Assembly (NCBI GenBank): GCA_030704615.1
Contig: CM060733.1
Location: forward strand, 1,798,001 to 1,862,000
DNA from: Takakia lepidozioides
Lineage: Eukaryota; Plantae; Bryophyta
Direction: 5' to 3'
DNA length: 64,000 nucleotides
In this document: positions 35,201 through 64,000 of the stretch, in pieces
Layout of the letters: each line of letters begins with the position of its first letter
Numbering within the stretch: position 1 is the stretch's first letter
Program-made: the position numbers and the translations under genes
Notes under the pieces: model-generated
The model's database searches: none
Seen by the model: only the letters and a program-made list of their open reading frames with translations
Told to the model about the DNA's origin: nothing

Positions 35201-36321
35201 ATAAGAGAGATTGAACCTTCCCCACTAATGGCATGCTTGCTATCATCTCCCAAAAGAACATATTGTGTAGGTAAAAGAGATCTATAGGATAAGAAATGCT
35301 CTCTCTCTGAACTCATATGTTGAGATGCTCCTAAATCAACATACCACACATGCTTCTGTCTAGCAGTGAGAGAGACACAACAAATAGAATAACGTTCCTC
35401 TAATGAGTAGCTATGTTCCCTTGACCCTCTCTGTTGCGCTCATCTGCAATGCGCTTTCTACAATCCTTGATTATGTGACCAAGTTTCTTGCAATAAAAGC
35501 ACCTTACTTTGGCTTTTTTGATCTTTGAGCTAGATTGAGGTTTCTGAAACCTCTGGGACTTCTGAGACATATGTGAAGGGAGTCTTCTATTCAAGACTCC
35601 TCCAGTCTTGCCTGTGAACAAAGCTCTGTCTACCTCTGTAGACGTACCTTGACCTTTTCTTCTTGTTTCCTCCTTGAGGAGAAGTCCTATGACAACATCA
35701 ATAGTTAAGTTGGTTTGTCTTGCTAGAGACACCACAAAACCATCATAAGATTTAAGTAAGGTTGCCAATAACACCATTGCGGCGTGTTCATCAGTCACAT
35801 TAGTTCCCACAGAGACTAGTTGATCTCGCAACACACAAAACAAATTCAAGTGTTGTTCAACTGAGTCTGACTCGGTCATCTTTTGACCATAGAACTTTTG
35901 CGTCGCATACACTTGCGATGTGACATCCTTCGTCTCATATATGCTTGCTAGCTTGTCCCAAACATCCTTAGCATTCTTAGCACTTATAATGAGATGCAAC
36001 TGATTGTCTCTCAAGCTTGTGATGATGCTAGCTCTTGCTTTCTGATCTTTCCTATCCCATATGGCTTGGCCAACAATAGTGTCAGGTCTTGAGACTGATC
36101 CATCAACCACTCCCCATAGATCTTTGTCTAGAAGTACCATCTCCATTCTAATCTTCCAGGTTTGATAGTTAGCTCCATTGAATCGATCTTCCACTCTCAC
36201 ATCTAATGCACTCGTCATAGACATAGAAGGAGGATTGCTAGAAGACGACGCTCCAGCCATAATCAAGTTCTCTCAATCTCAACTACCAACTCTTACCTAG
36301 AGAATAATGGCTCTGATACCA

Positions 36322-36613
36322 TGTTAGAATTGAGCAAAAACATGAACAAGAACTAAAGTCTTAGACTAAAGCTAAAACTAAAGCTCTCCTCCCAACCATA
36401 GAATCCACCATCATACTCTTACACTTAGACTAGTGGCTTCACCCCCGAGCTTGTATAAGAAGGTATCTAAGAAGTCCTACTTGGTCACTTCCACTTCCAC
36501 TATGGTGACCATCCACCTTCCAAAGGTGAGTTAAACAAGATAGTCTCTTAGACTTCTAAACCTTTGGCCTTCAAGACTCTTAGTCTTCTAGATATGTTTA
36601 ATTACTTCCAACA
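36322..36613 (-). repeat. Copia 5' LTR
   Basis: Adjacent to the PBS and followed by the TSD CCATT. Confidence 0.95.
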
Positions 36614-40872: not shown

Positions 40873-41106
40873 CTAAGAATCATCCTCCTCCGTGATTACA
40901 AGCTCCGTGGGTCTGGGCGCATTTGTTCCGAGATTTTTCTTCTGCTCGTGGCTGTACTTTTGGTACACAAGATTTCCAACCACAAACGCAAACACGCCGG
41001 TGCCGATTGCTGCCACCACGACATTGGGCTTTGTATGGAGCTCGGGGTTTACAAGGCGCGAGAAAGGTGAGGACCTACGAAGCCATTCACCAGGGTCCCG
41101 GCTCAT
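40873..41106 (-). CDS. Small single-pass membrane protein, SMIM8/DUF4500-like, intronless CDS
   Basis: FSRLVNPELHTKPN followed by a TM helix (VVVAAIGTGVFAFVVGNLVY) parallels FRAVNPELFIKPN plus TM of SMIM8. The first ATG is at 41106. Confidence 0.72.
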   Translation of the reverse strand: MSRDPGEWLRRSSPFSRLVNPELHTKPNVVVAAIGTGVFAFVVGNLVYQKYSHEQKKNLGTNAPRPTELVITEEDDS

Positions 41107-41906
41107 CCTCTCTGCACTTCTCAAATCCTTCAACCCCTCCAAGCAATCTCAACAAACTCAATCGTCTTCTGCTGTCCTCAGCTCCACTGCTTTCGCGCAA
41201 GCTCTGGCTATGGTGGCTTTGACAAGTCACCTTGCTTTGTCCCAAAACAAAGCATAACCCGCTTGGGCGTACGTTTGTAAGACAAATGTCTGACATTCAC
41301 GTAATATATTGCAGGAATGTTGATGCGGTTGCGGGTCCTTCACACTTTTATCAGTGCTTTAAATTTCGATACTTCTGATTGTATGTTTGTTGGGAGGGGG
41401 TAAGATTTTGTTAACATTGAAAGTGGCTCTAATAACATGGGAGACAATTACATATAGAGGGTGGACTGAACTACACAGGGGTATTCAAGGCTAGCTCTGC
41501 TGATGAAACTACCTGGGTGACAAAGAAAAGAAGCAAAGATCATCTCCGAAAGTCTTTTCCTTCAAGACAGTATTTCTTTCTACATGGAAAACAGTACCTT
41601 CGCACAGCTGGCAGAAAATATTTTTTTGGAGATCATCAGTATCATGTTTATGATGTGCTAATCCATTTACACCTGTGAGCTACCTGTAATTGATTTGAAC
41701 AAGGTGGTTTTCGGCGAAGTACTGAATTGAACCTTCAGTGAGTGTCAGGACAACTGTCCAAAACTGCAGCTGCATTGCAGCCGAATTAGAATATGTGAAC
41801 CATAGCTCGGTGCCTTGCAAATGATGCACAAGATAGAGGAAGGGAATGTATGCCTTTTGGCCTTTGTGCTGTATAAGATCCAATGACATCACCCCTACAG
41901 TCAAGT

Positions 41907-44584
41907 CTAACTATGCGTAGCAATGCACTCAATCTCAATGCGGGCGTTCAAAGGCAGGGCTGCCACTTGGTATGTAGAACGTGCTGGTGCTGGCCCTGGG
42001 AAATCTGCAAACAGAGAGCGCCTATCAGAGACAGTGTTACAAAGGGAGAACCAATATACAGCCTGTAAGGAGACAATTGATCATGTTTTCCAGCAAAAAA
42101 GTTCGCAAATTCTCATTTGTTGCTCTGGGTAATCGAGTCACTGCAATCTAGGGAAATAGGATGATACTTGGCTAGAAATATGCCGTGGTATCCACATTTT
42201 TCTAATCAATACCCACATGTTTCTCTTCCCTGTCTGTCCATGATCCTGTTTGTACCCCTCTATGGATATTTTCATTTGCCAGCTGCAGTGAGTTCAGAAA
42301 ATTGCTCCTAGCCAGCACACACTCAAGAGGCCAAACATCACGGGCAAGGAAAGAAGATTCAAACGAGAGAGAAATACTTACACTTGGCATAAATCTCATT
42401 AACAGCCTTGAAGTCTGCAAGATCCGCTAGCATGATTGTTGTTTTTACAACGGAACCATAGCTAGCACCTCCTGCTTTCAATATCTCTCCAATGTTTCTC
42501 ATAACCTGCAATGTCACCACCTCACATTCAGAATAGTTTGAGCTTAAGCTTAAGCACATCATCTAGTTAGTGCACATTCTTAGAGCCGAAGATCGGAGCC
42601 AAGGAGTGGTTAGGAGGTTGCACTATACCTGTTCTGTCTGACCTTGCACAGTCTCGGAAGCAAATTTTCCTGTCTACAGACCAATAACACATCTCTTAGA
42701 ATCTCTACAATCTCAGATTCTTCCATCCTTAAACTTGAATGATAGACATGTCATCTAGCTTCACAGTACAACTGCTACAAAGCCAATCTCTGTTCTTATG
42801 TGCCCCTATACTTTGTACACTAACACGGGGAGGAGAAGAGAGGAAGAGATACCAGAGAGAAATTTACCTCAGGAATCAGGCCCAACATGCCAGAGACAAA
42901 AAGAAGGTTGTTGGCTTTGATAGCTTGTGAATATGGCCCCAGTGCTGCTGGTGCCTTGTCCGTGATCACTGCCTCTTTCTGGACAGCTACTCATCAGCCA
43001 CTTTTCGGTCAATATTGATACTATCCTTACTCAGTTATGGAAAGAGAAGCACTGCATCCAGCTTGTACAAATTGGATATCTTACTGCAGGATTCCACATG
43101 ATTGGTGCTTAACAAGGGAGCTCAACAATGAAGTGGACAGGCATTGTATGTAGTTGCAAGAGCACACTACATGTGTTCACCAAATCAAGCATACAGACAT
43201 CCGCGTCATGTCTATTGATAATGCACGTCTCGTTATGAAGACAGAGTGCATGACACATGGTATAAGAGTGGTTTCGATCTTCCGATTACTTTCTACATTA
43301 AGGCTAACATGTGTTTGCAAATTCCATCCTCACCCCCCTCGGACCATGGGAAACCCTTGGCTTTATATAACTCCATTCAATCCTACACCAGTGGCCATAG
43401 CTATATATTTACTAATGTACAAACTCGCCCCATTCTCCAATGCAATACCAGATTGTAATCCTCTGTACTTGATAACACTGAGTGACCTCATTGTGACATC
43501 TTGTAGTATTCACCCAACACTGAGGAAAACCTTTCTCTAATGAGATTGTAATCCTCTATATATGATAACATTAAAGACTTAATTGTGATCCTTTGTGGTG
43601 TTCACCACATATTTTGCAACAAAAGGAAGTTGAGAAACTTGCAAACGCCTTTCAATACAATGCAGAAATCCATGAAAACTTTCTTAGAAAGTGCATGTCT
43701 GAAATCAAGTAAGACATTGTCCTATACTTGATAAAATTGATTGACCTAATTGTGACTTCTTGTGGTGTTCACGCAACACTAGGAGAACCTTTCTCTAATA
43801 CACTACCAGATTGCAATCCTCTATCGACCTCATTGTGATCTCTTGTGGTGTGCCTCTTAAATTTCGCAACAGATGGAAGTAGAAAAAATTGCAAAAACCT
43901 TTCCATACAATACAGACTTCAACGAAAACTCTCTTAAAAGTGCATGTGTGAAATCAAGCCCGTGTTCAGAAATAATGAATGGGACTAGCGCCCAAGATTT
44001 TCCTTCATACAGTGCCCTGTTACCGTATATTTGCTTACTTCCCAGAGAGATCATTAGTTCTTTCTCTCTGGAATTCCCACATTGCTGCATTCCATAATTT
44101 TGTGTCTGAAATCTTGAACAGTGCTTAAAATTAGTCATGGAGGAGGAGTAAAATAACGACTAGCTCGGGGTACCCAAACCCCTAGCGCAAGGTGGCAGAT
44201 GGGAGAGGAATATTCTTCTGCAAGATGTATGAATAGAAGTGAATTAAAAGGAGGAAATTCAAACGAGAACACACTCGAGATTCTCACCAACAGAAAAACC
44301 AACGAATATGAGTATAGAATTCATTCTCACACACTGAGGTCCAACAGCTTACTTTCAGCTTCAACGAGGCTTCGTGCTGATGCCTTCCAGGAAAAAAAAG
44401 GAAGGGCACGCCTTTCGGCCATCGACCGGCCTAAGACCTTGGATCCAAAAGACACGCAACAGAAGCCAGCTCCCTGGCCAATGAATCCCTGGGAATTGCT
44501 GCACATTTCCTTGAAAGAGGATGGGGAACCCCCGATTGCTCTCACCATGGCCCCCGCACCCGTCAACAGATTAGCTGCAGCCAT
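41907..44584 (-). CDS. RIDA: Reactive intermediate deaminase A (YjgF/YER057c/UK114) with an N-terminal organellar targeting-like extension; 5 exons (~44584-44335, 42986-42868, 42673-42629, 42504-42381, 42004-41907)
   Basis: Motifs TDKAPAALGPYSQAIKAN, FVSGMLG, VVKTTIMLADLADFKAVNEIY and PARSTYQVAALPLNARIEIECIA (catalytic Arg and Glu present). An alternative ATG lies at 44596, and the exon 1 donor is uncertain. Confidence 0.92.
43440..43960. repeat. Degenerate ~95-120 bp tandem repeat with a higher-order duplication in RidA intron 1
   Basis: AGATTGTAATCCTCT...ATTGTGA...TTGTGGTGTTCAC recurs about 4 times, and 43610-43712 resembles 43860-43958. Confidence 0.75.
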
Positions 44585-46380: not shown

Positions 46381-49300
46381 AGACACGTTTGGGTGAGCAG
46401 AGTAAAATGTAGAGGAGCGATACAGAAAAGCAACGTATTGTGCGAGGGTGGGAGAGCTCAAGAGCTTCACCAGCCTGGGATGCTCACTGCCATCGCTGCA
46501 CAATTGTAGTTAACGTTGTAAGTGGCAGGCCCGCGTGACAATACTGCATCTCCCTTGATCTTTTGCATGCCTTTGTTTTTGGAAACTTTCATATTCGGAG
46601 TAAGAGACTGATGAGGGGCTGTAGTGGCTATCCCTCAAAACAAGCACTGCCGGTGCCCGGAGCTATGGTCTCCGAAGCACTTCTGCAATGACAGCTGGGA
46701 ATTTCAGAATTTTCACAAGCTTGTGTACATATTTGGAATCTTGCTATGCATTGGCAGACAAAATTGTACCTTGCACTATCATCTTGTAAGAGCTTCAAGA
46801 GATTCAAGGGGAAAAGTTTGTCGTTGTCACGAGAGAACGCAGTTACCACACCATCTCTAAAGGCATGTGGAGGGTTTCCCTTCTGATTGGGAAGCGTTAC
46901 AGTGTTTGTCTTTGGGAAGAAATCTGTCGGACCAACAAACATTGTCAATTGAACTGGAGACCTATGAAAATAATGCAGCGAAGCTTCCAGTGGACAAGAG
47001 GATGCTTGGTTATTAATTCAGTGTCCTTAGAACGATGCGTCGTAACGATTTTGCGAACCATGGTTGCGTCGCAGGTCACAAATCCAGTGTCATCCATCAA
47101 ACTCTCCTTTTTAGAATTCTGATTCGGTGTAGTCGTCAGCTAACTGCGAAGCGCTTGCTTGTTAGAAAACAAGAACTAAGGATGCCAACTTGCCCAGGAG
47201 GATGGACCTCTTATCAGAAATTTCCTGTTAGGGCTTGTGTCAAGTTCTGTGATTTGTATTATAGAATATTCAGTTAAGAAGGATGATATCTCTGGAATCC
47301 GAATCTGCTTCTGATACTCTTGGGGGATGTAGGATTTGTGAGGAGCTGGTATGGCACCAACCCAGACGACATTTCTCTCCATATCCAGGTACGCGGAGTG
47401 CATGTGTGCAGCCAAAAGACAACATACTTGACATCTAATGAAATTGAGAATCAAGGTGAAATAAAAATAAATTCTGTGACGTAGATTTTACCCAAACACC
47501 ACTGTATGCATAAGGCGATGCTTCCATAGCATATGAAACCTTCAGCAAGGATCAATTATACCTGAAGAGTTTTATAGAGTCTAGTCTACACACACATTTT
47601 GCTGGATTGCGAGGGGAGCAGGTTACGAGAAGGGCAGTCACTAACAAGAGCTAAGTTTCTGGCCAATGCTTTCCGGGTTTACTGGCAGCAATCTGTGGAT
47701 GCTGTGAGCCTGGAAGATGGAGGGATGGGTGCCTGTGCCAACAAGTAAGTCATGGCAAGGCAGCTTGGAGCCAGGCAGTTACTGGGCCAGCAGGGGAACA
47801 AACATCACAATGTCCAATCACCTAAACCCTTCATAGGCTATACTATGAACGTCTCCTTACCTGAGGACTGAAATATCCAGCATCATGGGTCCTGAGTTTC
47901 TAAGAATCAGCAACCTCAACATCTCGTTGGCTGAAGTTCTGTAGCTCCTGTCTCCTTGTGCATCCTGAGGGGAATCCACTTGGCCAGCCACTAGTATACA
48001 AAGATTGTGGCCAATGGTTCGGTGCCTCATCTCAGTGGATGGCTGAATTGAGTGGTTTGACCGAGGTATGGTCTCTAGAAGTGAATAAGGACCCAAGTTG
48101 TCAATTTTGAAGATGCTTGTTTGCATAGGTCAGTTTGGTTAGAACTGTGGCAAGTGTAGGAGAAAGCAAGAAGGTGGGCCTGGCAGCCTCTTCTGGGCCA
48201 CCTGTAGCAGCACATGGAATTCTGATTTTGATTCTGATTCTGCAAACGGAGCATCCTGATCAAGGAGTGGGGTCTGTACGTTTCTCACACAAGCCTCACA
48301 CCCCTATATTCAACTGTAGGTCCTCACTAAATGGAAGATGAACTTCAGATCTCCTTTTCGGTATGTGCTAAACCCTGTGAGGGTTTATGCAATATATGTG
48401 TACTGTACATTTCTCCCACCACCTTCAACCTGTTGGACCGGCGAAATTGAAGAAGATCAAACTCAACTCACTTTGTCTAAACAGTTCTTAAGGCAAAGTT
48501 CAAAAGTGATAACTGGATCATAGATGTACTGCACACTGCAAGGGCATCTGATAGGTAGCATGGGGCCGATGGCTCCCATTTGGACATTCAACTATTCATA
48601 ACTGGATAGATTGTGTTAGCAGTCTGGCATGGCACGGCACTTCCAGCCACATGTACATGTTCCCGTTGGGATGATTGAATGGGTGGCATGGTGGGTGCAG
48701 AGTTACTGGGGTGTCTCTGGCTGCTGCATCCTGCAAAGAAAAACCACTGCACCTTGGACAGGTATTTAATGTATTTTATCTTAATGTTCAGTTGTGCATT
48801 CCTTTTCTGAATCTTAGAAGTCCTGGTTAAGTACCGTCGTAGCAACCGTTTAGGTAGTATTGAGGACTTATTGGCCCTGGAGCGTTTATTTCTTGCTTTC
48901 AGAGGCGTTCAAGGCAACCATGAGGCACTGCTTTGTTTTTGGATGTATCTCAACTTAGAAAGTTGTGGTACTGCTGGATTAATGAATGTTTGGAAACAAA
49001 CTCTCTAGATTCTGCCGTGTTATTAGTTAACTCAGCTGCAATCCATCTTGCAGGGCACCCTGTCGAAAATTTCCCCTGGGGTTAACTAACCTTGTAGACA
49101 TTCACAGTTGCTGATTTCTTTTGCTGATTGGCCAGTGGGACACCCAATCAGTAACCAAGCAGCTGTGCTATTCACACTGTTGAGGAGATGGGCTAGGCTA
49201 CCTGCATCTCTCTTCCCAAGACAGTTATAAACCTTTACTGAATGGTCTAGCCTACCTGCATTTCTCTTCCCAAGACAGTCCTAAATCTTTACTGAAGCAA

Positions 49301-49809
49301 GCTCAGCATAGAGCCATTTGCAGTGGGCTGACATTTGAACCATCTGAAGGCAACTGTGAATTTTTCTTCCCAAGACAGTTTTAAGTTTTTTCTTGAACTC
49401 CTCAGTTACATCATGCCATTTTGCAGCAGGTTTGCATTTGAACAGTCTAAACAAAGGCAACCATGGCACTTGCAGGTGCCAAGGAGCAGATTGTGTGGAA
49501 GCGTGGACCCTTCCTCAGTCTCCTTTTCTCGAGGAGGATTACTAATCGATGGTCATGTGTCTCTGGGAATCACAGTTCGTGCACCCTCCCGAAGGTTCAA
49601 TGCTGCCTGGACCTGGACAGTAAAGATTGGTTATGGTAGATTTATTAACTTGCTGATTAAAATTCACATCTGGCTACATAACCTGACTTCAGTTGATGGT
49701 TGTTGAACAGTGATTGATTCACACACATTCATGGGGATTGCTTGGTCATTTGAAAAGGTTAGACTCATACACTAGTACACACCTCTAACATCTCAAAGTT
49801 TATGTACAG

Positions 49810-52800
49810 GAGAGGCTTAGGTGCCAGGGCAAATGTAAGTCCAACTCCCATCCCACCAGGCCCAAGTTCACGAGCTGTGGATGAACCAGATACGGCAGCG
49901 CCCAAGCCAAAATCTGGTGGAGCAATTGTAAATGGGGATGGACGGGTTTCATCTTCCTTGGCTGAAGCAGCATGGCCCAGGCAGATGCATTCTGAGCAGG
50001 ATGCGGAATTCTCCTTGTCTTTTGACAATGAAAGCACCCCTGGCCTTACTGTGGTCAAGATTCAAGGGGTGGACCAAGAGAATCTGCTAGCAGATGTAAC
50101 CAGCAGCTTCAGTGAAATGAGTTTCAGGCAAGTCAAACTTCCAGTGGTGCTATTTTCAGTACCATTCTTATTTTAGTAACAGTGACTCAACACGTCTGCT
50201 CAATGCCTGCCAACCAAGTAAAGTGATGTGGGGTTGAGGGCTGCACAAGGGAGCTTCCAGTGGTTGCGTCTGTGCTCTCTCTCTGTTGTTTCCTTGATCT
50301 TGGAGAGAAGGACAAGATACATCTCATCTACTTGTGTGCCCAACTTGGTCTTTTCTGCACCCCACCCCTCCACCTCCCACCTTTACTCATAGGCTACGTC
50401 CCATTCCTCTGCAGGTAACTTGGGGTACTCCCCCTGCGATCACTATCAGCCAGGGATGAAACCAAAGATCATTTCTATAAAGCTAGATCTACTGAAAATT
50501 TGCCAATTGTTGGGAGCTTATCTTGAAATGACCTGGGCAATTATAGTTCTTCATGCCCACCTATCTCCAAGGATAAATTTCACGAAATTCTCAAGCAAGA
50601 ATTTGTGCTTAAGAGTCACCCTTTTGTTTCAATTGCAACAGTGTGCAGAGTGCAAAGCTGCTGACACAGAATAATCGCACACTAGACGTGTTTGTGGTTA
50701 TGGATATTGAAACCAAGGCAGCCATTCCAGAGGAGAAGTGGGGACATATAAAAGAGAAGATATTGTCCAAGCTGAAGCTACGCAAGGTCCTCAATACCGC
50801 TCTTGACGACCCCAAGCTTGTGGAACAGGTCTGCAAGCATTAGCCATAGTTGCCTTGCCCTTGGCTTGGGTTTTCGGATGACCTCCCCCCTTGGCCCCCC
50901 GGATGGACAGTTGCACCCTACAAAGGGGATGATTGGTCCAGAAGATGGAGTGAGGGATATGATTTGCATATATCGTAGGTAGTCCTTGAACTTTTTCCTC
51001 AACTGGTACATGGGCGATTAGCTTCAAAATATGGTGTTGAATTTGAGAGCCTTTGATAGTCGTTTCTAGGGAGGGAGTGATGTCATAAGACTGGGGGATT
51101 GGAACAGGTGGCGTTCCTTACATCTGCATTGGACAAGGTGGTGAGGGCAGACAGCAGACCTGAGGTGGTTGAGGCAGTGAGTACATGCTCTTTACTCTAA
51201 ATTTGTCCTCTTAAAGTGTAAATGTCTTTTGCTCTATGGGAGAAGGACAAAAGTGTGGCAATGCTTGAAGGTTTACTTGGAGGTGAGGATTGTGGTTGGT
51301 AGGCTTACTATTTGCAAAGTGGGTTTGAGCAATTACGATACAAGGAGGATCCGCGCAAGCGAGCTGACTTGCTGCGCTATATCGACAAGATGGAGCAGCC
51401 CATGGTAATTCTTCCCCAATTTGTGTCGAGATGTAAGAGTAGAACACTCTGGTATGCAAGTCAACATTGTTCCTGTTGCTTTGTTGTCACTTCGGTTACA
51501 TCAACCAGGCCTTTTGTGAGAGGTAAAGCTTGGGGAGGGGAGGGTGGGCAAGAGGGGCCGAGAGCATGAAGGAAGGGAGACACTAGTCCCTGTGCAGATT
51601 TTGTGATTTCACAGAACATGAACCTAGCCTTCTGCCTTAAAAGTGAGGGAAGGGGAACAAGAATGAAACACAGATTGGTCAATAGGAGAACTGGCCCCAT
51701 ATCATTCGAGACTTCTTGTCCGTTGTCGCTCAAGTTTCTCAAACTGGCTTTGAGAAAAATATTGTGCAGAGAAAGTTCAATTTCTAACTCTTCTGATGAA
51801 CCTGTTTTGCAGATTACTGCAGTGATAAGGTTATTCTACTTGTATTCGTCTCTTTTAAATGTTGCGGATGAAGCTCATAGTCACCGGCAACGACGAGAAC
51901 AGGTGAAATTTGTGTCTCTAATGCTCATGTGTTTATCATTCCTGTGTTTTAACTGGCTTTTGTTCCTTCTGATTTTGAACAGCTTGAGGTATAGTGTCCT
52001 CATCCTTCCTACCTTTCATACTTTTCTTGGGCATACTGTTGCACTAACCATCTCTCACTTCCAACCATTTAGTTTCTGGGCAGGCGTCATTTATTCAGTC
52101 ACATACTGCATAGTTAACTCGTATCTCTTAGAATGGTTGCAGGTCTGGGCTAGCAGAAATGCAACACCACTGTGGTATGCATCGTTTGACCATACACTGC
52201 GTTTGTTCAAAAAGGTTGAAGTGGGTGCTGCAGAGCTCCAAGATCTACTGAACAGGACTGAGGTAACAAAGAATGCCATTGTAATGTTTGTGGATGAATG
52301 TATTTGGAGAAGACTCCGGCTGAAATTCGCATAACTAAGAGCCACTTCACCTCACGGTAACTTTCGGGGGTGAGTTCTAGATGGTGGATTGTTTATATGT
52401 ACTAGTGGGTTGTCTCTTTGTCCTCTTTATATGAACTGATATCAGCATTTCTCAAGTGTAAGAACTGATGATGTCTGAATCTCTTACTGATGAGATTCAA
52501 CATGCCATACATTCATTATTGATGTGCAAACAGTAGTTCGAAAAATTCTTGCATCACCTTTGTTTATTTTGATGTTCTTTTAGTGCTCAGATGAGCACCT
52601 TTACGTCCTTCATACTTCCTTAGTGCCTGGCAGGAATGACAATGGGTTGTGTATGTGGGCTGCCAGTAGAATTTTCCTCTGGTCTGCTCATGTATTTGAG
52701 ACCTGTACATCCTTACACCTTCTTTGGTAGGTGAGAATAATGGTTGAGGTGTGGGTGGGCTATCAGTATAATCCAGTGTTCACAGCACACCCCACAGAAG

Positions 52801-55800
52801 CTCGCCGCAGAGAAATCTTGACATGCTTACATCGAATCTTTCTGCTTTGCAATGATCGTGAGGTGACTCCTTTTCTCTTTCTGTGGGTTGGGCTGTTGGT
52901 GCATTTACCCAATGTGGCTTGTCTATCTATGGAACAGCAGGTCCAATTTCCCCCCTTCCAGTGGTTGTTTACTTTGTACCTCAGGCCCTCGGGAGGCCCA
53001 TAGGGATTAGATAGTTTCTTCCTTTAAGATTCTTCTTCAATTCCGCCAACTCCTTTTTTGTTTCGTCTCTCATGTTTTTTCCATTTTGTCCCATAAGCTC
53101 TATGAGCTTTCCGCGGACGTTATAAAGTACCATGTCATTTCATTTCTTCAAAGAGTGCTTCATTGAAGTATCTAAACCCTGATGTTCTCAATGAGAGTTA
53201 TTGATCATATAGCGTGTAGGCAATCCGGGTAAATTTCGATTCTCAAATAACTAGCTATCCAATAGCAGGCCTCTTATCATGGTACTCTCTTAAATGATGT
53301 GGACATGGCTATGCAGGATCCCCGACTGAGTCCAGCACAGAAGACAGAGGTGGAAGCTGAAGTAGAAGCTGAGGTTTGTTCAGTTGACATGTGCTTAGAA
53401 GGTCTGTCTGTCTTGTTTCAAAAAGCAGTGAACAGTGACAGACAACAAAAATCAAGGAAGTTTATGAATCGACAGAGTGTATAAAACCACATAGCAGAAA
53501 AAAGAAAGGCAGTGACAGAGGGGTCTTTGTTCTGTTTTCTCATGGCCTCTGGCTATGCAGACCATACTAATGGTGAACTTATCACAACATAGGGTGAAGA
53601 AGAAGAAAACAGAAACTTATTATCACTGGATGAGACCCAGAGGGCCTAGGACGAATGAGTAACAAACAAACTAACATACAAACCTTTTAGCAAACTTCAT
53701 TTTTGAAGGACCAATGGGATAGAATAGGAAAACAAGAATGAAATGAAATGGTACTTTATAACGTCCGCGGAAAGCTCAAAGAGCTTATGGGACAAAATGG
53801 AAAATAAAGAGAGAGGAAACAAAACCTGAGCCAAAAATCAGCCCAAAAGCAACTACTGCTCAAGGGATTGTCTAAGGGGCAAGGCCTTGTGCAGGTAAGC
53901 TGTCAAGCATTTCTGATCTTCATAGTGGAAGACTTCAGTGAGAGATTGAGTTCCACAGAATAGACAGTGGAATCTCCCACGGATCTCATAATATAGAGGG
54001 CAATAAAAGAAGAAGTTTTCCGGTGCAAGCTGGGCATAAGAAAGAAAGAAATGAAAGGAAGAAAGTACACTTAGGGGGCCCAGAAGGAAAGAGAAACTTT
54101 ATACATATAACTTGGCAGGGGTGCTTTATTGCAGATCGAGATACTGTGGAGGACAGATGAGATGCGAACAAAGAAACCAACGGTTCTGGAAGAGATTGTA
54201 ACAGGGCTTGATTACTTTCGCTACTCCCTTTTTGAGGCTGTCTGCACTACCTACCGATATGCTGAGAACTCGTTGAATGTGAGTGTGAAACCTCAAATCC
54301 TGTCTTCTGCATTCTAGGTGACTATGTGTATGCACATATGAGGGTCTTCACCCCTTTGCCATTGGTAGTGCTTTCATTTCTGTTAATTACTGATTGACAT
54401 GTTCAAATTTTATCGGGCCAGGCAATCTATGTGGGTGAGGGTGTGGTGGTACCCAGTTTCATCAAATTTGGTTCTTGGATTGGTGGCGATCGTGATGGAA
54501 ATCCCTTTGGTGTGTAATTGAAATCCTGCAACTCTTCCAATGTTGATTCATCGTGAGATTTTTGGCCAATACTTTTTTTGTACAGGACCATAGGGCTTCA
54601 AAATTGCAACAGAACTACCAATCCAAGTGAATATATGTACTTTGTATTTACTCCTGCAAAAGCATCCGAGGGAGTTGGACAGTCTGATTGAAAAAGGACC
54701 TAGGATTTTATCATTAACTGTCGGTTGGAGGTTTGTTGTAGTGGCCTGCCCTTGTTAGTTATCATAGGGGCTACCAATTGTTCAAACTCTTGTTTGATGG
54801 ACTGATGTGTAAGCATATGACAAAGGAAGACCTCTGGTATCCAGCAGGACTTATAGCATTCTGTTGTTTACGCCCAATGGCAACTCACTGATGTTCATGT
54901 GGGGCCAGTGTTACCTGAAACCACATTCATGGCTGCGCTGCTGCAAAGTCGACTGATTCTTGCAGAATACATCCGCCGCTGCCGTACCTGCCAGGTGGAC
55001 GCTTTTTAACGTTATGAAGTTGCTTCTTCTTTTCATCTCTGCCCTGGGAATGCATCTTTCAGCTGGGAGCAGTTGCTTCTTTTTCGAGGAGTGTTGTGAG
55101 ATCTGTATCCAGTGCATTCTTTGATGGTTCTCAAACTTTTCTCATCTTGGGATTTTCTAAGATGGTTTGATGATTGGGAACTTCCCCACTAGAGCTAGCT
55201 AGTAAATGGACGATTACAAATTTTGCCTACCTGCAATCGTCAGGATATGATTCCCTTCCCTGTACTGTACACGTTTTCCTCATTAGTAGAAAAAAAGATT
55301 GCTATATAAGGTTTTAGAAGTTCTTATTCCAATTCAAGAGTTGCTATGGTAAGCTTGCCGAAGCAAAGAAGCGGGTAAGCCTATGGGGGAATCCACCCAG
55401 GAGCCTGATGGATCACAGTCAGTGAATGAGTTACATGTACAATCAGCGTGCTGAGTGTGCACTGTCTTGCGTTGCAGGACATGCTCACGCACTCGCTATT
55501 GGTATGCAAAGTGTCACAGGAGCTGCTAGACAACCTAGCAGAGGACACAAAAGTGATGGAGCAAATCCCATCTATCCGATTCGATGGTGCCGATGACCAG
55601 GTATGTCGCTCATAATCAGGCAATGACCACATCTTGATCTCACTTTGGCACTAGGAACATCAACTGAAGTGGGAAAGGGCTTGAGAACGTCCACAGGAGA
55701 CTCAAATATCTTGTGAAAGATCTCTCACTATAAAGAAAGGAGCAACTAGCCGGAAAAATGTGAGGCCCACATAATTCGAATTGCCTTTCTTTACTTCCAC

Positions 55801-58800
55801 GGGAGGGCGCATGGGTCGAAGTAGGAGAGGCATGAGGCGATGGAGAGAAAATTTGTTGTTTGTGAAGTGCAGCGAGAGTTAAAGCCCTCATTGCCAGAAA
55901 CAGTACGCAGCACCAAACTCTCATTGCTATTGTCTGCCAGTGGACTAAAATGGACCTCTTATCATTATTGCAGGAGCCATATAGATTGAAACTAAGAGTG
56001 ATGAGACATCGGCTAGAGCAAAACCTTCGTATTGTGAATGCTGGCTTGCGTGGACTAGGGAAAGCTGGCATTCGTGACGAGGTGTGATTTGTGAACCCTA
56101 TCCTTCTTGTGGTTCCCATTTTCGTGTGGTTCAACGGTAGTAGAAGACATCTTTTGACTGCCCTCAGATTGTGGGAGTTGTCAAAAAACATGAAATAAAA
56201 TCAAATGAAATGGTACTTGCCAAAGTCACTTGTTATGCCAAGGCAGAGGCCAGCAGCTAAAATTTTATGTCCAAAAGAGAAATGAAATGAAATGGTGCTT
56301 TATAACGTCCGCGGAAAGCTCATAGAGCAGTTTCTTTCTGCATAGAGAGAAGGAATGATATGGTACTTATAAACGTCCACAATGTAACAAAAGAAAGAAA
56401 CTCTACTATATACTGTAAACAGGGGCCCCAAGGACCCAGGGGACCAAGTAAACAAGAAGAAACCACTTCAGCAAACATGAAACACCGAGCACCACTTGGC
56501 ATGCCACTGGCAGCCGGATGGTGTGAAGGAGTCTTTGGTTGACCCTTAGATTTTATGTTAGACATATTTTGAGATGGTTTTCCTCACAGAAGACAACAAC
56601 GTAGATGTTGCACATTGGCTTGGATGTTGGCAGACACAAAAGGCTCGGTCATCTGAGTCAAAGCATAGCCCTATGGAGCTGGGCTTCATCTTGAAAACAA
56701 GCAGACTGCTGGCTTGACTGATGTGTCGAGTGGTGGATGGTATGGTGGGCATGCAGTTGCTAATAGACATTGAGTACAACCTGGATGAGATTCCTGGACT
56801 GGATCCCAAAAAGGATGCCTATACCAACGAGGATGAGTTTCTTGAAGATCTTAGGCTCATCGATGTGAGTCTTTGTCAGTCATATCTCAGCTTGTGCTTT
56901 GAAGTTGGAGACATCTAGGTCCTTTTACCTGCCAAAATATATATTTTCTTTGCTGAAAATCCTCTAACCTTAGATCAGTACTTCTCAGTGCTTTTTTGGC
57001 TACCTTTAAATGTAAGTATGGAGATATCTCGATATTTATGAGGATATCCTCTTCAAGGCACCTATAAGGGCATGCCCCGTGAAGTACAAAGGGGTTGACC
57101 CCGTACTGACATGAACAGGTGACAGTACAACTAAATCCAATACAACTGGGGGATCCACTATGGTTCTTTTTTAGAGATCTCAACATTGAGGGTTGTTGGA
57201 TTTTGTTAGCAGGGTTTGTTAGTGTGTTCTTTTCTAAACCTTGTGGGGGGTGAAAATTTGCAGCCCTGTGGCATTGTTCCCTGTGAGGAGGGATCAATTC
57301 TGCTTGTGCTTATGATATTATTCCATTCCCCTACTATGTACTTCTTTGGTGGGCTCTGCACGAAGGACTCAAGTCTAATTTTCCAGATCTTGTGAGTCTT
57401 TCACAGGGCAGTTCTGCATTAATTGTTGACTTGGTCATCACAGTTCAGATAAAAACCAGGCCAATCTTAGAAGATCATCGCTATGATGTCCTTCTTTCAT
57501 CTCCCCAGGTGGTGTGCAAGACATATATTATTACCTTACAGACAGTTTTGTGTACGCCCTGGAAATTTGCAGAGGTCATTACGAAGTTGCGGAGATATAC
57601 GACTGGCTGATAGCAAGCTAAAGGACCTTATTCGCTTGGCAGAAACTTTTGGGTTCTATCTCTGTGCTCTTGATGTCCGTCAGGAGTCGACAGTTCATTC
57701 ACAGGTAGGCTACCTTTTGACAATTCTGAAGCAGTTTTCTTGTTCTGTTTCAAGGCGACAGAGCTCTGAGCTTTTCGTTGGGTGCAGGCCACAGACGAAT
57801 GTATGCGGCTTTTGGGCTTGGCTGAGAACTACAGCTCGCTGTCTGAGGCAGAGCGCATGAACTTACTGGCTGAAACAGTGTCAAGGCCACCCCCCTCGGA
57901 CAAACTTGAGGTGGAAATAACATCTTTTTGGATGAAGCTCCGTGTAGTTACAGTTTTTCAGCCTACCCAAGTGGATCTTCTCAAGTGGATATAAGGGGAG
58001 GGGAGTTCTATCCTTTGGGAGTAAACCTGCATTTGTGCTTGATTTCAGGAATTGCTGCGGTTGATGTCAGAATCGACGAGACAAGTGGTGGACTTGTACG
58101 TTGTCTGTGCGGACATAATGGACACCATATCTCATAAATCAATTTCTTCTTATGTCATTTCCATGACTCGCCAAGCATCCCATGTGATGGAGGTCTGCCC
58201 AACTTTCCGATCTTTGTCTAACATAAATGTGTATCATTTGTAAGAACTTGAGAACTGGCATTTCAGCCTTTGGTCTATTCACAATGATCAAGAACAGACT
58301 CTTAAGTTAACTGGGAGCTTCTTTCAGCCCGTGTATGTTAATTAGGTTATCTCTCCCTCTCTCTCTTTCTCTTTGAGAGAGCGATCAAACTGGGCAAACT
58401 GGGCACGGGGTCAGTGGCCACAAGGCTACGGCAAACAACGCCTTATGAGTACATTCTTTGAGAGAACGTAGTCCCCTCACCTCTGTTCACCAACTTTCAA
58501 AATCTCAAGGCTGGGCCTAAAGCCCTGCCACTGTTGGGGTCTAACTGTTGGGCAGTTGACACACAGCAGATTGATGTTTGTGTGAAGGGCTGTATAGTTA
58601 ATCTGGAAGACCCAAACTAATCACTTAAATGTCAGTAAGTCCCACTGCTGGAGTGAGCCACTCACAATGGTAGTGTCTGCTCCCTTTTGTTCCGCCCAAA
58701 CTGGGTGTGGGGTATGGCCACAAGGCTATGGCAAACAACACTTGTGAGGACATTCTCTTTGTAGTTCTTTGGTCTGATCTTTTCTATGATTTCAACGCTA

Positions 58801-61800
58801 AAATTATGTCTTAGCTGAGTCTTCTGTGTTGTCACCCAAACTCAGTATGTCTCCACCCTCGGTCTGGAACTGATGAAGTCAGTGGGGAGTTATAACAGCT
58901 GGTCACTGTTTTACAGGATGTAGTTGATTCTCCTAGACCGATTCTCTAAGTGCTGAGACAGCAATCTTTCTGTTTTCCTTTCGCTTTGCTGTTGTTTCTT
59001 TCCAGAGGTTCTGTCCCAGTGCCTTTGTTTCCATCAAGAATGCTCTTTTTTACCTTGGATGTTAATTTTTGGTCATAGTTACTAGGCTCTCACATTGATG
59101 TCTGAATCATGTAATACTGTGCTAGTGTCTGGTCCTTGCCTTAGCCAGACATCAGCTCGGTAAGCATGGGGAACGAGAGACCATCCTGCACAAAATAGGC
59201 TTGAGACTTTGGAGGCTCTCTCTTGAGATTCTCTAAGCAAGTGAATCATCAGAGTTAAATTTCCTGACAGCCATGATTTCTCCATCTCTTGATGAGACGG
59301 GCTTGAGTGACTGCTTGAAGAGACCACCTACACCCGCTAACAAGGACTGAACAGGTTTTTCTCAGCACATAGAATGTGATGAAACTCCAAAACCCTCTCA
59401 ACTTCAAACACATGCACATCTTTCTGACATTTGCATGTGAAATTCTTGTCCCAAAGTAGTAGCACTTCCAATGCACAGTTGCCTTGAGGTTGGCTTCCTG
59501 TGAACAGCTTTTACAGCCCTTTGAACAGTTCTCACCAAGGGTGTTGGTGAGCAGGTGTTGTTCCTAGGATGGTTTGTTTGCAAAGGCCTTATAGAGAAGA
59601 AGGCATCTGGCGATTGGTTAGCACGACTGGTGGTCTCCCCTCTCTTTGAGACAATCCCAGATCTGGAGGTACCTGACCGTGACTGTAATAGGTTGTGCGA
59701 AGAAGTTGAATTCACTTGTGCTGGCCAATATTGCCGATGAAAGTCACTTGTGTTAGTATGGTTATGTTGCTTTAGAAGTTATTGGGGATGTCTGTAGCCA
59801 AATCAATATTCACCTGTACATTTATTCGTCTCTGTAAGATGACTGGTGGGTGTGCAGCATATGCCAGATGCTTTACAAGTGCTGCTAGGTAACAAGACCT
59901 ACAGGGCCATCCTTGACGCTTCCGGTGGTGTTCAGGTCTGCCCCTGTTCTCTGCTTTTTTCCAATACCGAAACTTTCAAATTGTTTGTCATGGCTGGTGG
60001 GTGTGTTGGACTTGCCTATCATGCCTTCTGGTTGTTTGGTTTTGTTTATGAATGGTGTTGTTCCCTCCTCCTTCCCATCTAAATTGAAGCTGGCAGTCTA
60101 TACTGTCACACTAACACTTTCTACTGGATTGCCCAGTAGCATCATAGGCAATGGATTCGGAACAAGAAGGAAGGGTGACTGAAGGAGGGATTGGGCACAG
60201 GAGGTGATGCTCGGTTACTCCGATTCATGCAAAGATGGAGGCATTACTGCTAGTGCATACAATCTGTACAAAGCACAAGTAGTAGTTCAGAAACTCACCA
60301 AGGAAGCAGGTGTGAAGTCATGCATTTTCCATGGCCGAGGTGGCACTGTTGGTCGTGGGGCTGGCCCTACCCACGAGAGTATCCTCTCCCAGGTAGGTTT
60401 GTGGGCATAAAATGTTTACAGTCTCTCAGAAATGGTTGGTGGCAGCTTACCTCTTCGTGCAGCGGCTTTGTTTTCTTGTGCTTGGTTTGTTTGTCATGTA
60501 TTGTTTTCCCATATGCTCTTTCAGCTTGATGTGGAGCATTTCCTTTCGTTATTCTTTTTATCTTTGCTGTCTTTCTTTCATTTTCATTCCACTTTGTCCC
60601 ATAAGCTCTACGAGCCTTCCGCGGACGTTATAAAGCACCATTTCATTACATTTCTTGGCTTGTTCTACCTTGTCCCATGGGGCCCCCTCCATGGACACTA
60701 CAGATTTTCTTTCTTCTAATTTCTAGGAGGTTAGAGGGAACACCTTTGGTAACCACAATCAGAACTGTGGCCATGCCAAGGGGTAGAAATACACCCAGTC
60801 CAGACAGCCAGAGAAGTTCCTTCTCTCTCTGAAGTTCTTTCTTATTGTCTGACTGTCCCATGGCCCTTGGGGAATTCTTTCTTTCTCTTTGGGTGACATT
60901 TGATATATGTTGATGTGGTTTTCCCCTTTATTCCACTTTGCCCCAGAGGGCTTTGGTGCCCTCTGGGGATGTTTTAAGTTTCTCTCTCTCTGTGGACATT
61001 ATAGACTTTCTTTCTTTCTCCTGGCATCATTTATTTTTCTCCTGCCCTAGATGGAGTGATAGCATGGACAGATACTAGGATACCCCTCTGAGGAATTTTT
61101 CAAGTTTTTTGGTTTTTTAGATGCCTTCTGTGCCTCGTCTGGATGGAATTAATTTCGTCTTGTTCATCTCTCAAAAGTGATCTCACCTGTCCTCTCATGT
61201 ATATCTTGGCAGCCACCAGGCAGTGTTGATGGAAAAATCAAGTTCACAGAACAGGGTGAAGTCATCACATATCGATATGGAAACTCCCAAACAGCTGCAT
61301 ATGAATTGACAGTAAGTTGTCCACCTCTCGGATGCTGTTGTTTCTAACATTTTACCCTTGAGTCAGGAAGCTCTGAGCTATGTTTGCTAATGGTTTCTGC
61401 TTGAGGTTGCTTTCTGGTTACCATTTTCAGATGGAACATTCCTCACATGATATCTTTATTAAAATGGATTTGGGTGATGATGACAGGTGGGCATAACAGG
61501 GCTCCTGAAGGCCAGTTGCCCTGCCATTCAACCGTGTGATTCTATAAACCCCAAGGTCTTTCTCGCTTTTGCTCCACTTTGTCCAATGGGCCCTCAAGCA
61601 CCCCCCATGGACGTTATGAAGTTTCTTTCTTTTTGCTCGCATCCTCTCTTTCTTCATCTCTGGAATAAAGGGGCTGGTCTCAGGCTGTCAGTTATAAAGC
61701 ATAGGTGGCAGTCTTGTTACATGTAGGTTTCTCAATAAGTGGAATAGTAAACTAAAGATTTTCATGTAGCATGCGTTGAGTAATATCAGTTGGTGTGGGC

Positions 61801-64000
61801 CTCAGTATTTAGCAATTATGGAGGCCCTGGCAGCAACAGCAGAGAAACATTACCGCGAATTGACAGATGAGACAGAAGGATTTTATGATTACTTTTACGA
61901 AGCAACAGTGGTGAACGAGATAAGCCTCATCAACATTGGGAGCCGCCCTGCTCGCCGCAAGGCCGGGGTTCGTGATAAGTCCTCCTTGCGTGCCATTCCT
62001 TGGGTGTTTGGATGGGCCCAGGTAACCTGCCTGTCTACCCCAGTGCCCCCTCTGCCTATCTTCCCTATCTTTCTGTAACTCGCCCTCCATAATCTTGTCA
62101 GTGGGTCAGTCTTTATTCTGTTAACTACAGATGCGTCCTGGCTATACTGCACCTACTGTAGCCCAGGTAGTTGGATTTCCCTTCGACTCCTGTTTGAAGA
62201 TTGGCTAGGACCTACCCTGAGGGTATAGTATAGTCACACCGAGATACTTACCTGTGGAGCCAGTTGTGGGATTTCAATCCAAACTCCAAACTCATGCCAA
62301 AATTGCAACAGACCTTGACACAGCCAATGACTATCTAGTGACACAGGGGTCAGTGAGTAGCACAGACATCACAATAGGCAGCATATTGTTGGTTCCTTAC
62401 AATGACCCATGTGAGACATGTTTGCACTGCTTTGCCACACCATGGATGGTATTGACAGAAAGAAAGGCATCAATAACGTTCTTCCAAGGCCTAAATGGCC
62501 AGAAGAGCTCACAAAGTTGTTGAATTGGTTGATGGGATGGCAGTCGAGGCATACGCTGCCAGCGTGGTATGGGGTCGGCAGCGGTATGCTGGGCTACACA
62601 AACAACCAGCCCGAGCGGATAAAAGAGCTGCAGCGCATGTATATAGAGTGGCCCTTCTTCCGCACCTTCCTCTCCAGTGTGCAGGTACTTGCCTCCTTTA
62701 ATGGAGGATAAGGCTACCCTAGCATTGTAAGATTTTAGAGGTGCATTGCAAAATGATGGACTTGGGTTTGAAGTAAACCAGCTTAGCTTCAGCACCTAAC
62801 ACACCATAACTGGATGAGTTGGGTGACATGAACAGATGTCACTATTCAAAGCATCAATGGAGATCGCTCAAGAATATGCGCGGCTTTGCGGGTACTGTGT
62901 CAGATCCCTTTTGGCCTGTATTTAGCTACTCTGAGCTGTGTAGCTGCCGCTCAAATCTCTTTAGCCCTGTAAACTGGGAAGGCATGTAATTGTCATCCAT
63001 TACCTATATTCTTAGAATGACATTGTCTGTAGAAAGAGCAGATGGCAAGGTGGCGTCTTGGTTCTTGTCATCTTCCCCCTCCCGTGTATGGTCATGTTTC
63101 TTAGTTTATATTTTAGGTGTTTACTCTGGTTATAAAAAAAGTTGGGTGCATCATGTCAATGGTTTTCCAATGTTCTGAAAATGTAATGCATTGGCTGGTC
63201 GAGGTTAGAATGTAGCAAACCCTATCTGTCAATGGTCCTCAAAGCTGCATTTTGGCTGCTGTAGATAGTGGTACACCTGCTTTCTCATTTTGCTTGTGCA
63301 CCTTACTCACTGCTTCTACTCTCGTTTCTCCCACTTGGTCAGAAATCGCATAACAGAGAAGCTGGTGTATGATTTGGTGGCTCAAGAGTATTTTTTGACT
63401 AAGGCACAGGTATGTGTTTACCTCCTACTCTACATTCCATGGGCCCTTATGCTTCTACTTTCATTTCTCCCACTTGGGCCGAAATTGCATAACAGAGAAG
63501 CTTGTGTATCTTTGTCTTCTTTTCATGGATGTTTCTGACGACCAGCATGATTGAAACCCTGTTGTCGAAGAGTTTGTCTGTCTGGCGCCGTGTCTGAAGA
63601 CTGAATTTGTGTGTATTTGAACATGGGGATCTCTTTACCTCTTCCTCTCCCGGTGGATGTTATAAAGTTCTTTCTTTCCTCCCCCTTTAGTTGACCGTTG
63701 TGCATGAGCAGTGGTGGGGTAACTTGCATGACCAGCTCTGGGGGATTGGTGTTCCATGGGCACCATGCCTTGATCATTGCCAATGTTCTTTGTACCTGGC
63801 TGTTGCTACATTGGTCACCAGCTCAAACTCTTGCATACCACCAAGATCACCTCAACAGCTTAAAGATATTACTGAGGTGAACCTGGCTTTGGGTACTTGG
63901 TCCAATTGTGGATTGGATGTACAGTTTCTGATGGTGTCTCAACAAAATGCACTGCTGGAAGATAACCCAAGCTTGGAAAGATCCTTTGACACACGGCGCA
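49810..64000 (+). CDS. PPC: Phosphoenolpyruvate carboxylase with an N-terminal ACT domain; 27 exons modelled (49810-50127, 50642-50828, 51108-51176, 51303-51404, 51813-51902, 52143-52262, 52767-52862, 53317-53373, 54135-54278, 54422-54509, 54909-54994, 55478-55600, 55974-56081, 56757-56864, 57573-57704, 57788-57910, 58049-58192, 59555-59668, 59858-59935, 60201-60392, 61213-61311, 61487-61555, 61806-62021, 62544-62684, 62836-62891, 63343-63409, 63925->64000); true start uncertain, 3' end outside the window
   Basis: The spliced frame is open throughout and contains [87 protein letters not shown] and LRAIPW. Confidence 0.93.
53058..53146 (+). repeat. LINE-B tail copy in a PEPC intron
   Basis: Matches the reverse complement of 29920-30012. 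Confidence 0.88.
53736..54030 (-). mobile_element. 5'-truncated LINE-B copy in a PEPC intron
   Basis: Tail plus the end of ORF2; matches 29920-30200. Confidence 0.88.
56278..56328 (-). repeat. LINE-B tail fragment
   Basis: (GAAAT)n GGTGCTTTATAACGTCCGCGGAAAGCTCATAGAGC. Confidence 0.85.
58385..58760 (+). repeat. Two LINE-A 3' fragments in a PEPC intron
   Basis: 58385-58460 matches the tail; 58470-58760 is a diverged copy of 7680-7965. Confidence 0.82.
60588..60650 (+). repeat. LINE-B tail copy in a PEPC intron
   Basis: CTTTGTCCCATAAGCTCTACGAGCCTTCCGCGGACGTTATAAAGCACCATTTCAT. Confidence 0.85.

Follow-up and report, generated by a model that had tools for sequence, protein, structure and literature searches.

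A 64,000-nucleotide (nt) stretch of Takakia lepidozioides DNA (hereafter the window; contig CM060733.1, positions 1,798,001 to 1,862,000) contains most of a nuclear, expressed and intron-rich gene for a phosphoenolpyruvate carboxylase (PEPC) that carries an ACT domain ahead of its catalytic body. The product of this gene, termed ACT-PEPC here, almost certainly consists of a pre-sequence, one ACT domain and a complete PEPC, in that order from N- to C-terminus. The ACT domain is single and ACR/GlnD-like, and it lies on one transcript with a catalytically intact PEPC. In the reading we favor, to which we assign a rough probability of 0.55, the architecture is as described and the ACT domain would act as an extra allosteric module sensing a small metabolite, by analogy with other ACT-bearing proteins. 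The parts of the gene found in the window are as follows.

49476-49594, plus strand: upstream coding exon, part of the N-terminal pre-sequence; transcript contig, AG/GT boundaries, open frame, ending in phase 2
49810-50005, plus strand: remaining, poorly conserved pre-sequence and linker ahead of the ACT domain; in the same exon as the first ACT half, ~18% identity among embryophyte orthologues
50006-50127, plus strand: first ACT half, comprising a predicted extra N-terminal strand (FDN motif), then strand 1, the loop DQENLL and helix 1; phmmer matches to orthologues at E 1e-10 to 1e-7, 64% identity to Mesotaenium
50128-50641, plus strand: GC-AG intron in phase 2, cutting the ACT domain after helix 1; joint in both runs, with a 3-base placement ambiguity allowed for
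50642-50786, plus strand: second ACT half, with strands 2 and 3, the invariant D-x-F and helix 2; 52% identity to Mesotaenium, secondary structure as predicted in the Marchantia paleacea model
50787-50828, plus strand: short linker and start of the first PEPC helix (DDPKLVEQ); alignment to orthologues and bacterial PEPC N-termini
51108-51176, 51303-51404, 51813-51902, 52143-52262, 52767-52862 (TAHPTE catalytic His), 53317-53373, 54135-54278 and 54422-54509, plus strand: eight PEPC exons confirmed by transcript joints
54909-64000, plus strand: remaining PEPC exons, located by tblastn with the Sphagnum orthologue, as were the next four
60198-60392, plus strand: PEPC exon with two catalytic loops
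61797-62021, plus strand: PEPC exon with LRAIPW
62833-62892, plus strand: PEPC exon with FKAS, the equivalent of Escherichia coli K773
63922-63999, plus strand: PEPC exon with TRR, the equivalent of R832

Transcript evidence was drawn from contigs of two public runs, belonging to two studies, that were aligned to positions 49200-55150. The runs contained 13-19% of the words sampled from 49400-55400, approximately the expectation for exons alone, and no intron was present in the contigs across the aligned region. A single 1378-nt contig carried, with zero mismatches and in this order, 49476-49594, 49810-50127, 50642-50828, 51108-51176, 51303-51404, 51813-51902, 52143-52262 and 52767-52862, and so connected the ACT exons with no fewer than six PEPC exons further downstream; more joints extended as far as 54909. 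Joints 50127>50642 and 50828>51108 occurred in both runs with no mismatch on the listed pieces, and the ACT and PEPC exons are therefore part of one mRNA. An annotation artefact would require that the ACT exons form a separate upstream gene or that the joining contig is chimeric. The runs were only guessed to be RNA, and the contigs are silent on isoform proportions and unable to rule out minor isoforms; against this, they lack every intron at GT-AG, and once GC-AG, boundaries and thus derive from spliced RNA, the same joints appeared in two studies, and the same order of parts recurs in independent full-length models and transcripts of more than 12 genera. We rate such an artefact as close to refuted.

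Inspection of the boundaries showed AG before and a GC donor after exon 49810-50127, and AG before and a GT donor after exon 50642-50828. The frame of the former opens at 49811, with base 49810 finishing a codon begun in the upstream exon, while the first full codon of the latter is at 50643; the codon split by the intron between them is AG/T, encoding Ser. Each exon was stop-free when translated in its own phase, exon 49810-50127 giving a low-complexity run and then the first ACT half, and the reading frame remained open throughout when phase was tracked exon by exon. Boundaries, phase translation and transcript joints thus bear out the exon coordinates, peptides and GC-AG intron proposed in an earlier sequence-only reading of this DNA, and the transcripts spanning 50127-50642-51108 to which it pointed were found in contigs of both studies. 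It overlooked that exon 49810-50127 has transcript sequence ahead of it, namely the upstream coding exon 49476-49594 and 235 nt more, the latter representing one or more further 5′ exons before 49200. By eye, the stretch LCGSVDPSSVSFSRGG in exon 49476-49594 resembles the stretch LCNAVDPLSISYSRGS in the pre-sequences of Ceratodon, Physcomitrium and Sphagnum; the alignment places just part of this exon on the orthologue pre-sequences. An ATG at 49802 was rejected as the start codon because the transcript contig puts it inside intron 49595-49809. At its other end, the gene is cut by the window approximately 50-60 residues short of the C-terminus. It has more than 25 introns, and the surrounding region is intron-rich, transposon-rich, 45% G+C and eukaryotic.

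A phmmer search with the first ACT exon against 1.8 billion representatives returned 11 proteins (E 1e-10 to 4e-4), among them a 1180-residue protein of Ceratodon purpureus in which the matching stretch stands ahead of a full PEPcase domain. The N-termini of orthologues passed the curated gathering cut-offs of the ACT clan, with Pfam ACT (PF01842) in Mesostigma (39.8 bits), Mesotaenium (32.3), an algal sequence (28.4) and Marchantia paleacea (27.3), and ACT_ACR9_3rd in Diphasiastrum (29.9 bits) and three algal sequences (~29-31 bits; 29.0, 29.1 and 30.7). The bHLH-TF_ACT-like model (29.7 and 37.4 bits) was above threshold in Chlorokybus and two algal sequences, and the moss orthologues scored below the Pfam ACT thresholds. 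In a 22-row alignment of the ACT domain that includes both window halves (A2), ACT_ACR9_3rd was matched at E<=1e-3 by 15 rows, the model for bHLH ACT-like domains by 12 and ACT by 11; the six Pfam families involved are all members of the ACT group, with none outside it. The A2 profile also matched the solved ACT domain of mycobacterial Rel (PDB 6lxg, E 1.4e-6) and RelA. In single comparisons with the Mesotaenium ACT domain, itself validated by Pfam, the first window half showed 64% identity (E 4e-16) and the second 52% (E 1e-15). BLASTP of the first half against the Mesostigma domain gave no alignment, and the link to Mesostigma is therefore made only via the profile and intermediate sequences. 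A phmmer search of the PDB with the ACT exon alone gave just chance GroES matches on the low-complexity part (E above 1), and an ESM Atlas feature search placed ACT/ACR clusters at 0.81-0.85, under the reliability level of the tool and hence a lead only.

The ACT domain of M. paleacea was modeled with AlphaFold using A2 (mean pLDDT 78.7), and the predicted order of elements was strand, strand, helix, strand, strand, long helix. In this orthologue model the domain is predicted to have the ACT ferredoxin-like fold, with its strands packed on two helices. Foldseek ranked the ACT-like domains of GL3 and maize R highest (E 1e-4, TM 0.69 by target), followed by the large mycobacterial GDH with its ACT-like domains and by 3-phosphoglycerate dehydrogenase (3PGDH) with its serine-binding ACT domain. 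VIA-align gave Z-scores of 9.8 for the large GDH, 9.1 for GL3, 8.9 for maize R, ~8 for aspartokinase regulatory domains and 6.7 for 3PGDH, values near 8 being little above the background stated for the tool; in the alignments to GL3 and maize R 79 residues were aligned, and the GL3 chain is 79 long. Since the ACT matches were consistent and the sequence searches agreed with them, the fold call has three independent lines behind it. The orthologue Pfam scores, the profile match to a solved ACT domain and the fold match accordingly uphold the single, in-frame GlnD/ACR-type ACT domain of the sequence-only reading.

The plant ACR and GlnD ACT domains are the closest sequence type, with ACT_ACR9_3rd, ACT_ACR_D1 and ACR10_N among the best Pfam models; a D-N motif before strand 1 is shared with them, as presumably is the D-x-F motif in strand 3 with ACR sequences. 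Unlike ACR proteins, which are several tandem ACT repeats without an enzyme domain, ACT-PEPC combines one ACT domain with a PEPcase domain. The bHLH ACT-like domains lie at the C-terminus of transcription factors and mediate dimerization. Those of GL3 and maize R (PDB 9c7n and 9c7o) are among the best matches in solved structures at the Z-scores given above, yet their identity to the ACT-PEPC domain is only 13-19% and no enzyme is attached to them. A catalytic domain joined to an ACT domain with this fold is also seen in E. coli 3-phosphoglycerate dehydrogenase (SerA) and aspartokinase (Z 6.7 to 8.3), in which the ACT domain binds the end-product amino acid and thereby exerts allosteric control. 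In contrast to these, the ACT domain of ACT-PEPC is N-terminal, single and attached to PEPC.

Kinship with the ACR family also bears on the possibility that the domain is a docking site for a partner protein, either a stand-alone ACR-type ACT protein or a nitrogen-assimilation enzyme, through which regulation would be exerted. ACT domains commonly pair side by side, and the ACT repeats of plant ACR proteins are the closest families by sequence. The chloroplast protein ACR11 is reported to bind Fd-GOGAT (PMC4944146). The proposal is pure analogy, and we hold it to be improbable.

Single window exons matched Pfam PEPcase (PF00311) at 105.6, 97.9, 44.4, 35.8 and 23.3 bits (cut-off 22.4), exons 52767-52862 and 54135-54278 among them. 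Orthologues scored ~890 bits over the full profile, which begins in them near the equivalent of 50787-50828, and they terminate in RNTG. All of the catalytic motifs (the TAHPTE His, GYSDS-KD-G, FHGRGG-GRG and LRAIPW) were found in window exons. When 13 sequences, comprising clade members and relatives, were aligned to E. coli Ppc (NC_000913), the residues H138, R396, E506, D543, H579, R581, R587, R699, R713, K773, R832 and N881 were conserved at 12 of 12 positions in 13 of 13 sequences; the E. coli numbering follows the literature, and the residue types agreed in the alignment. The last four of these (R713, K773, R832 and N881) we take, from E. coli structure papers, to include the aspartate-inhibitor site. 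Equivalents of K773 and R832 are both encoded in the window before the gene leaves it. Judged from the alignment, the catalytic and aspartate-site residues are intact in the clade.

The best non-eukaryotic matches were gammaproteobacterial PEPCs of 925-950 residues (Thiohalobacter- and Sulfurivermis-type), with which the PEPcase domain shares 46-49% identity and, as with E. coli Ppc, the checked catalytic and aspartate-site residues. According to Pfam these nearest bacterial PEPCs and E. coli Ppc consist of a PEPcase domain alone, starting from residues 7-13, in agreement with the earlier statement that the E. coli enzyme has no ACT domain. ACT-PEPC differs from bacterial Ppc by a pre-sequence of more than 100 residues, an ACT domain, more than 25 introns and its location in a nuclear eukaryotic gene. 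The S-I/V-D-A-Q-L/M-R phosphorylation motif of plant-type PEPC, which the sequence-only reading had reported missing, was indeed absent from all plus-strand frames of the window and from 11 orthologues. In plant-type PEPC the N-terminal phospho-domain lowers malate sensitivity. ACT-PEPC resembles plant-type PEPC in placing a regulatory element at the N-terminus of the enzyme (a putative one, the ACT domain, vs. the phosphoserine of the SIDAQLR motif), but differs from it in lacking that motif, in having a folded ACT domain in the N-terminal position and in belonging to a different PEPC clade.

Homologue searches and cluster look-ups recovered full-length ACT-PEPC orthologues from mosses [Ceratodon (two copies), Physcomitrium patens (XP_024391121, UniProt A0A2K1JQ73) and several species of Sphagnum], liverworts (Calypogeia fissa, Riccia sorocarpa and Marchantia paleacea), the lycophyte Diphasiastrum complanatum and the streptophyte algae Spirogloea muscicola, Mesotaenium endlicherianum, Chlorokybus atmophyticus and Mesostigma viride. 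On the chlorophyte side, the fusion was found in a cluster that includes Pterosperma sp. and several marine transcripts. It thus occurs in 12 or more green-lineage genera represented in public protein sets, in some cases with precomputed ACT matches. Within the homologue search, no sequence from seed plants ranked above the bacterial matches. A profile of the ACT domain plus the first 300 PEPC residues (A3), aimed at fragments from ferns, hornworts and T. lepidozioides itself, returned only partial bacterial PEPCs at ~75% query coverage, and the protein collections held no full-length protein of this species. By exon-wise tblastn, the window protein was approximately equidistant from the moss, liverwort and lycophyte orthologues (65-70% identity). 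Either T. lepidozioides represents a further lineage, or public annotation lacks its gene model or has it truncated.

In a quick maximum-likelihood tree (LG+G4, 940 columns), to be read with care given the very long E. coli outgroup, 21 of 21 eukaryotic sequences lay on one side of a branch with an SH-aLRT of 100. The closest relatives of this clade without an ACT domain were gammaproteobacterial PEPCs. Branching within the clade follows the species tree, from a marine sequence through prasinophyte-type sequences, Mesostigma plus Chlorokybus and Zygnematophyceae to land plants, and the simplest reading would be one old fusion followed by vertical inheritance. The tree covers eukaryotic ACT-PEPCs and bacterial PEPCs, and to that extent its result agrees with a reading of ACT-PEPC as a candidate third, bacterium-derived type beside plant-type (PTPC) and bacterial-type (BTPC) PEPC. 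Yue et al. (2012; PMC3493653) list a "gamma-proteobacterial" PEPCase of Physcomitrella, without an Arabidopsis homologue, among horizontally acquired genes, and score it as an acquisition of the land-plant era. This PEPCase is probably of the same family as ACT-PEPC: the Physcomitrium orthologue XP_024391121 falls in the clade, whose nearest non-eukaryotic relatives are Gammaproteobacteria as in their account. As the clade reaches Mesostigma, Chlorokybus and a Pterosperma-type prasinophyte, its origin is older than the land-plant era.

The same paper, in the part available, makes no mention of an ACT domain. Among open-access papers we found none mentioning an ACT domain on PEPC, a paper elsewhere being possible; the PEPC type itself had been reported in 2012 (PMC3493653). 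The parts of ACT-PEPC are known and the combination of ACT with an enzyme is a classic theme; the fusion itself is widespread and uncharacterised. It was overlooked because moss domains score below the Pfam thresholds, because an intron, with a GC donor in some species, splits the domain, and because several public gene models are broken at this point. The position of intron 50128-50641 (phase 2, after ACT helix 1) seems to be kept from Zygnematophyceae to land plants, and gene models of other species stop or read through at it. Many short database "proteins" (P0001-P0011) are the first ACT half running into the intron; in Spirogloea, one model (P0014) still contains the intron, as an insert of 28 residues, and a second (P0042) is missing half of the ACT domain. 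From the codons in such read-throughs, a GC donor is inferred in Spirogloea and one database fragment, as in the window, and GT donors in mosses.

Among five embryophyte orthologues, mean pairwise identity was 18% in the pre-sequence, 55% in the ACT domain and 76% in the core of the PEPC. In the ACT alignment, conservation reached 90% of rows or more at D10-N11, T18, L30-L31, D33, V45, A48, D59 and F61, and the polar residues D10, N11, D33 and D59 were invariant or nearly so from prasinophyte-type algae to land plants. Polar positions of this kind would suit a conserved site no less than a conserved core. The contrast of 55% identity in the ACT domain with 18% in the flanking pre-sequence argues against the domain being a relic of an old fusion with no present function in land plants, as do the absence of a disrupted frame in any orthologue, the kept intron position and the retention of the domain along the whole tree. 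A relic would be consistent with the loss of a loop glycine described below, with the scores of window exons and moss orthologues under Pfam thresholds, and with the seeming absence of the gene from seed plants, including the lack of an Arabidopsis homologue in the list of Yue et al. (PMC3493653). On balance, we consider a functionless relic very improbable.

Several observations weigh against our favored reading of the ACT domain as a metabolite sensor in a plastid-targeted enzyme. Taken alone, exon 49811-50127 reached just 13.3 bits with Pfam ACT_ACR9_3rd (E 0.09), under the cut-off of 27, and Pfam returned no match for exon 50643-50828 alone, a domain of ~85 residues being cut in two; the weak Pfam result for the window exons is due to the intron that splits the domain. 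The fourth strand was predicted at the N-terminus, as the FDN strand, and not at the C-terminus after helix 2 as in the canonical arrangement. Among the best fold matches are the ACT-like domains of the bHLH factors GL3 and maize R, and domains of this type dimerize and, to our knowledge, have no known ligand. The loop between strand 1 and helix 1, D-R-P-G-L-L in ACR/GlnD ACT domains, is N-R-x-G-L-L in prasinophyte-type sequences and D-K-P-G-L-L in Mesostigma, and in most streptophytes it is D-Q-(E/D)-N-L-L (D-Q-E-N-L-L in the window). Gly thus gives way to Asn in the window and most streptophytes; the only sequences to retain it are those of Mesostigma, Mesotaenium, Diphasiastrum and the prasinophyte type. 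This glycine lines the ligand site in many ACT domains, a common but not universal feature, and Asn can take the same backbone geometry (left-handed angles). The Asn would not by itself mean loss of the putative ligand site, yet it weakens the case for a sensor. On the side of plastid targeting is the composition of the pre-sequence: over their first 60 residues, the orthologues contain much Ser/Thr/Ala and Arg/Lys but little Asp/Glu (0-4 acidic residues in 11 of 12 orthologues, 10-16 Ser plus Thr in ten), as organelle transit peptides do. By composition, the pre-sequence is thus probably such a peptide, most likely for the plastid. Against it, the first exon was not located: among open reading frames (ORFs) ending in phase 0 at CAG/GT or CAG/GC between 40 and 49.3 kb, none was transit-peptide-like. 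The sole ATG-bearing candidate, 46865-47074, is Cys/Trp-rich and unconvincing.

The replaced loop glycine is the main reason for keeping a ligand-free assembly role as a serious rival. Here the ACT-like domain would pair with that of a neighboring subunit and stabilize or alter the PEPC oligomer, as in the plant bHLH factors. The position of GL3 and maize R among the top matches in both structure searches, the bHLH-TF_ACT-like hits in Chlorokybus and the two algal sequences, and the change from Gly to Asn would all agree with such a role. Conversely, the shape of the loop may persist with Asn, the invariant polar residues (D-N, D33 and D59) would be less usual in a packing surface than in a binding site, and bacterial PEPCs are tetrameric without an ACT domain. 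Complex prediction with two ACT copies scored 0.18 vs. a mark of 0.42 and counts neither for nor against pairing. We regard a ligand-free assembly role as less likely than the metabolite sensor.

The metabolite sensor is proposed because ACT domains usually act in this way. On this preferred reading the ligand of the ACT domain would be a small metabolite, and most plausibly an amino acid reporting nitrogen/carbon status (Gln, Glu or Asp), a guess based on the kinship with ACR/GlnD and on the role of PEPC in supplying carbon skeletons for ammonium assimilation; alternatively, the domain may pair with a neighbor and so generate the signal. The signal might then travel along a helix leading out of ACT helix 2 and on to the first PEPC helix, a stretch in which the model falls below a pLDDT of 50 after residue 99. 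The outcome would be a shift in the activity of the PEPC tetramer or in its sensitivity to the inhibitors Asp and malate, and control by the ACT domain would be added to the retained bacterial-type aspartate/malate site. PEPC is known to be controlled by metabolite effectors that act on its catalytic body, by N-terminal phosphorylation, by monoubiquitination and by the formation of hetero-oligomers with BTPC. A more specific version, which we offer tentatively and consider doubtful as a whole, is that ACT-PEPC represents an ancient green-lineage, probably plastid PEPC gated by an ACT-bound amino acid such as glutamine, which would tie anaplerotic carbon fixation to nitrogen status without a protein kinase, and that this control was lost in seed plants, which rely on phosphoregulated plant-type PEPCs.

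The remainder of the window contains the following features.

42359-42969, minus strand: two exons of a RidA/YjgF-type gene (matches to Pfam Ribonuc_L-PSP at E 9e-11 and 7e-7), located upstream of the PEPC gene
40873-41142, minus strand: small ORF, DUF4500 (E 2e-9)
2334-5549, plus strand: two long exons of what is probably a trafficking gene like TRAPP-complex subunit 11; match to Foie-gras_1, weak matches to Gryzun/TRAPPC13_C
32263-36266, minus strand; 5900-7956, plus strand; 30030-31938 and 36598-39012, minus strand: retrotransposon of the Ty1/copia type (gag, integrase, RVT_2), together with reverse-transcriptase fragments that are LINE-like

Approximately 49 kb of the window hold just three or four host genes, which indicates a large, repeat-rich genome. 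Within the PEPC gene, positions 53000-54100 (intron 53374-54134 and the preceding intron) showed word depths in the thousands in the two runs, many mismatches, strand-switching joints and loose ends. This segment looks like a transcribed, highly repeated intronic element, with purine-rich AAAGAGAGA-type stretches between joints, that has no relation to the PEPC message.

Few allosteric enzymes of plant carbon metabolism have been studied as much as PEPC, and an ACT module of its own would give it one more mode of control. The isoform in question ranges across prasinophyte-type algae, streptophyte algae, bryophytes and a lycophyte, with none found in seed plants, and the gene sits in testable models such as Physcomitrium and relatives of Marchantia. 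If amino-acid sensing proves true, ACT-PEPC would provide a portable regulatory part for PEPC engineering and a simple molecular link from nitrogen status to anaplerotic CO2 fixation in early-diverging plants.

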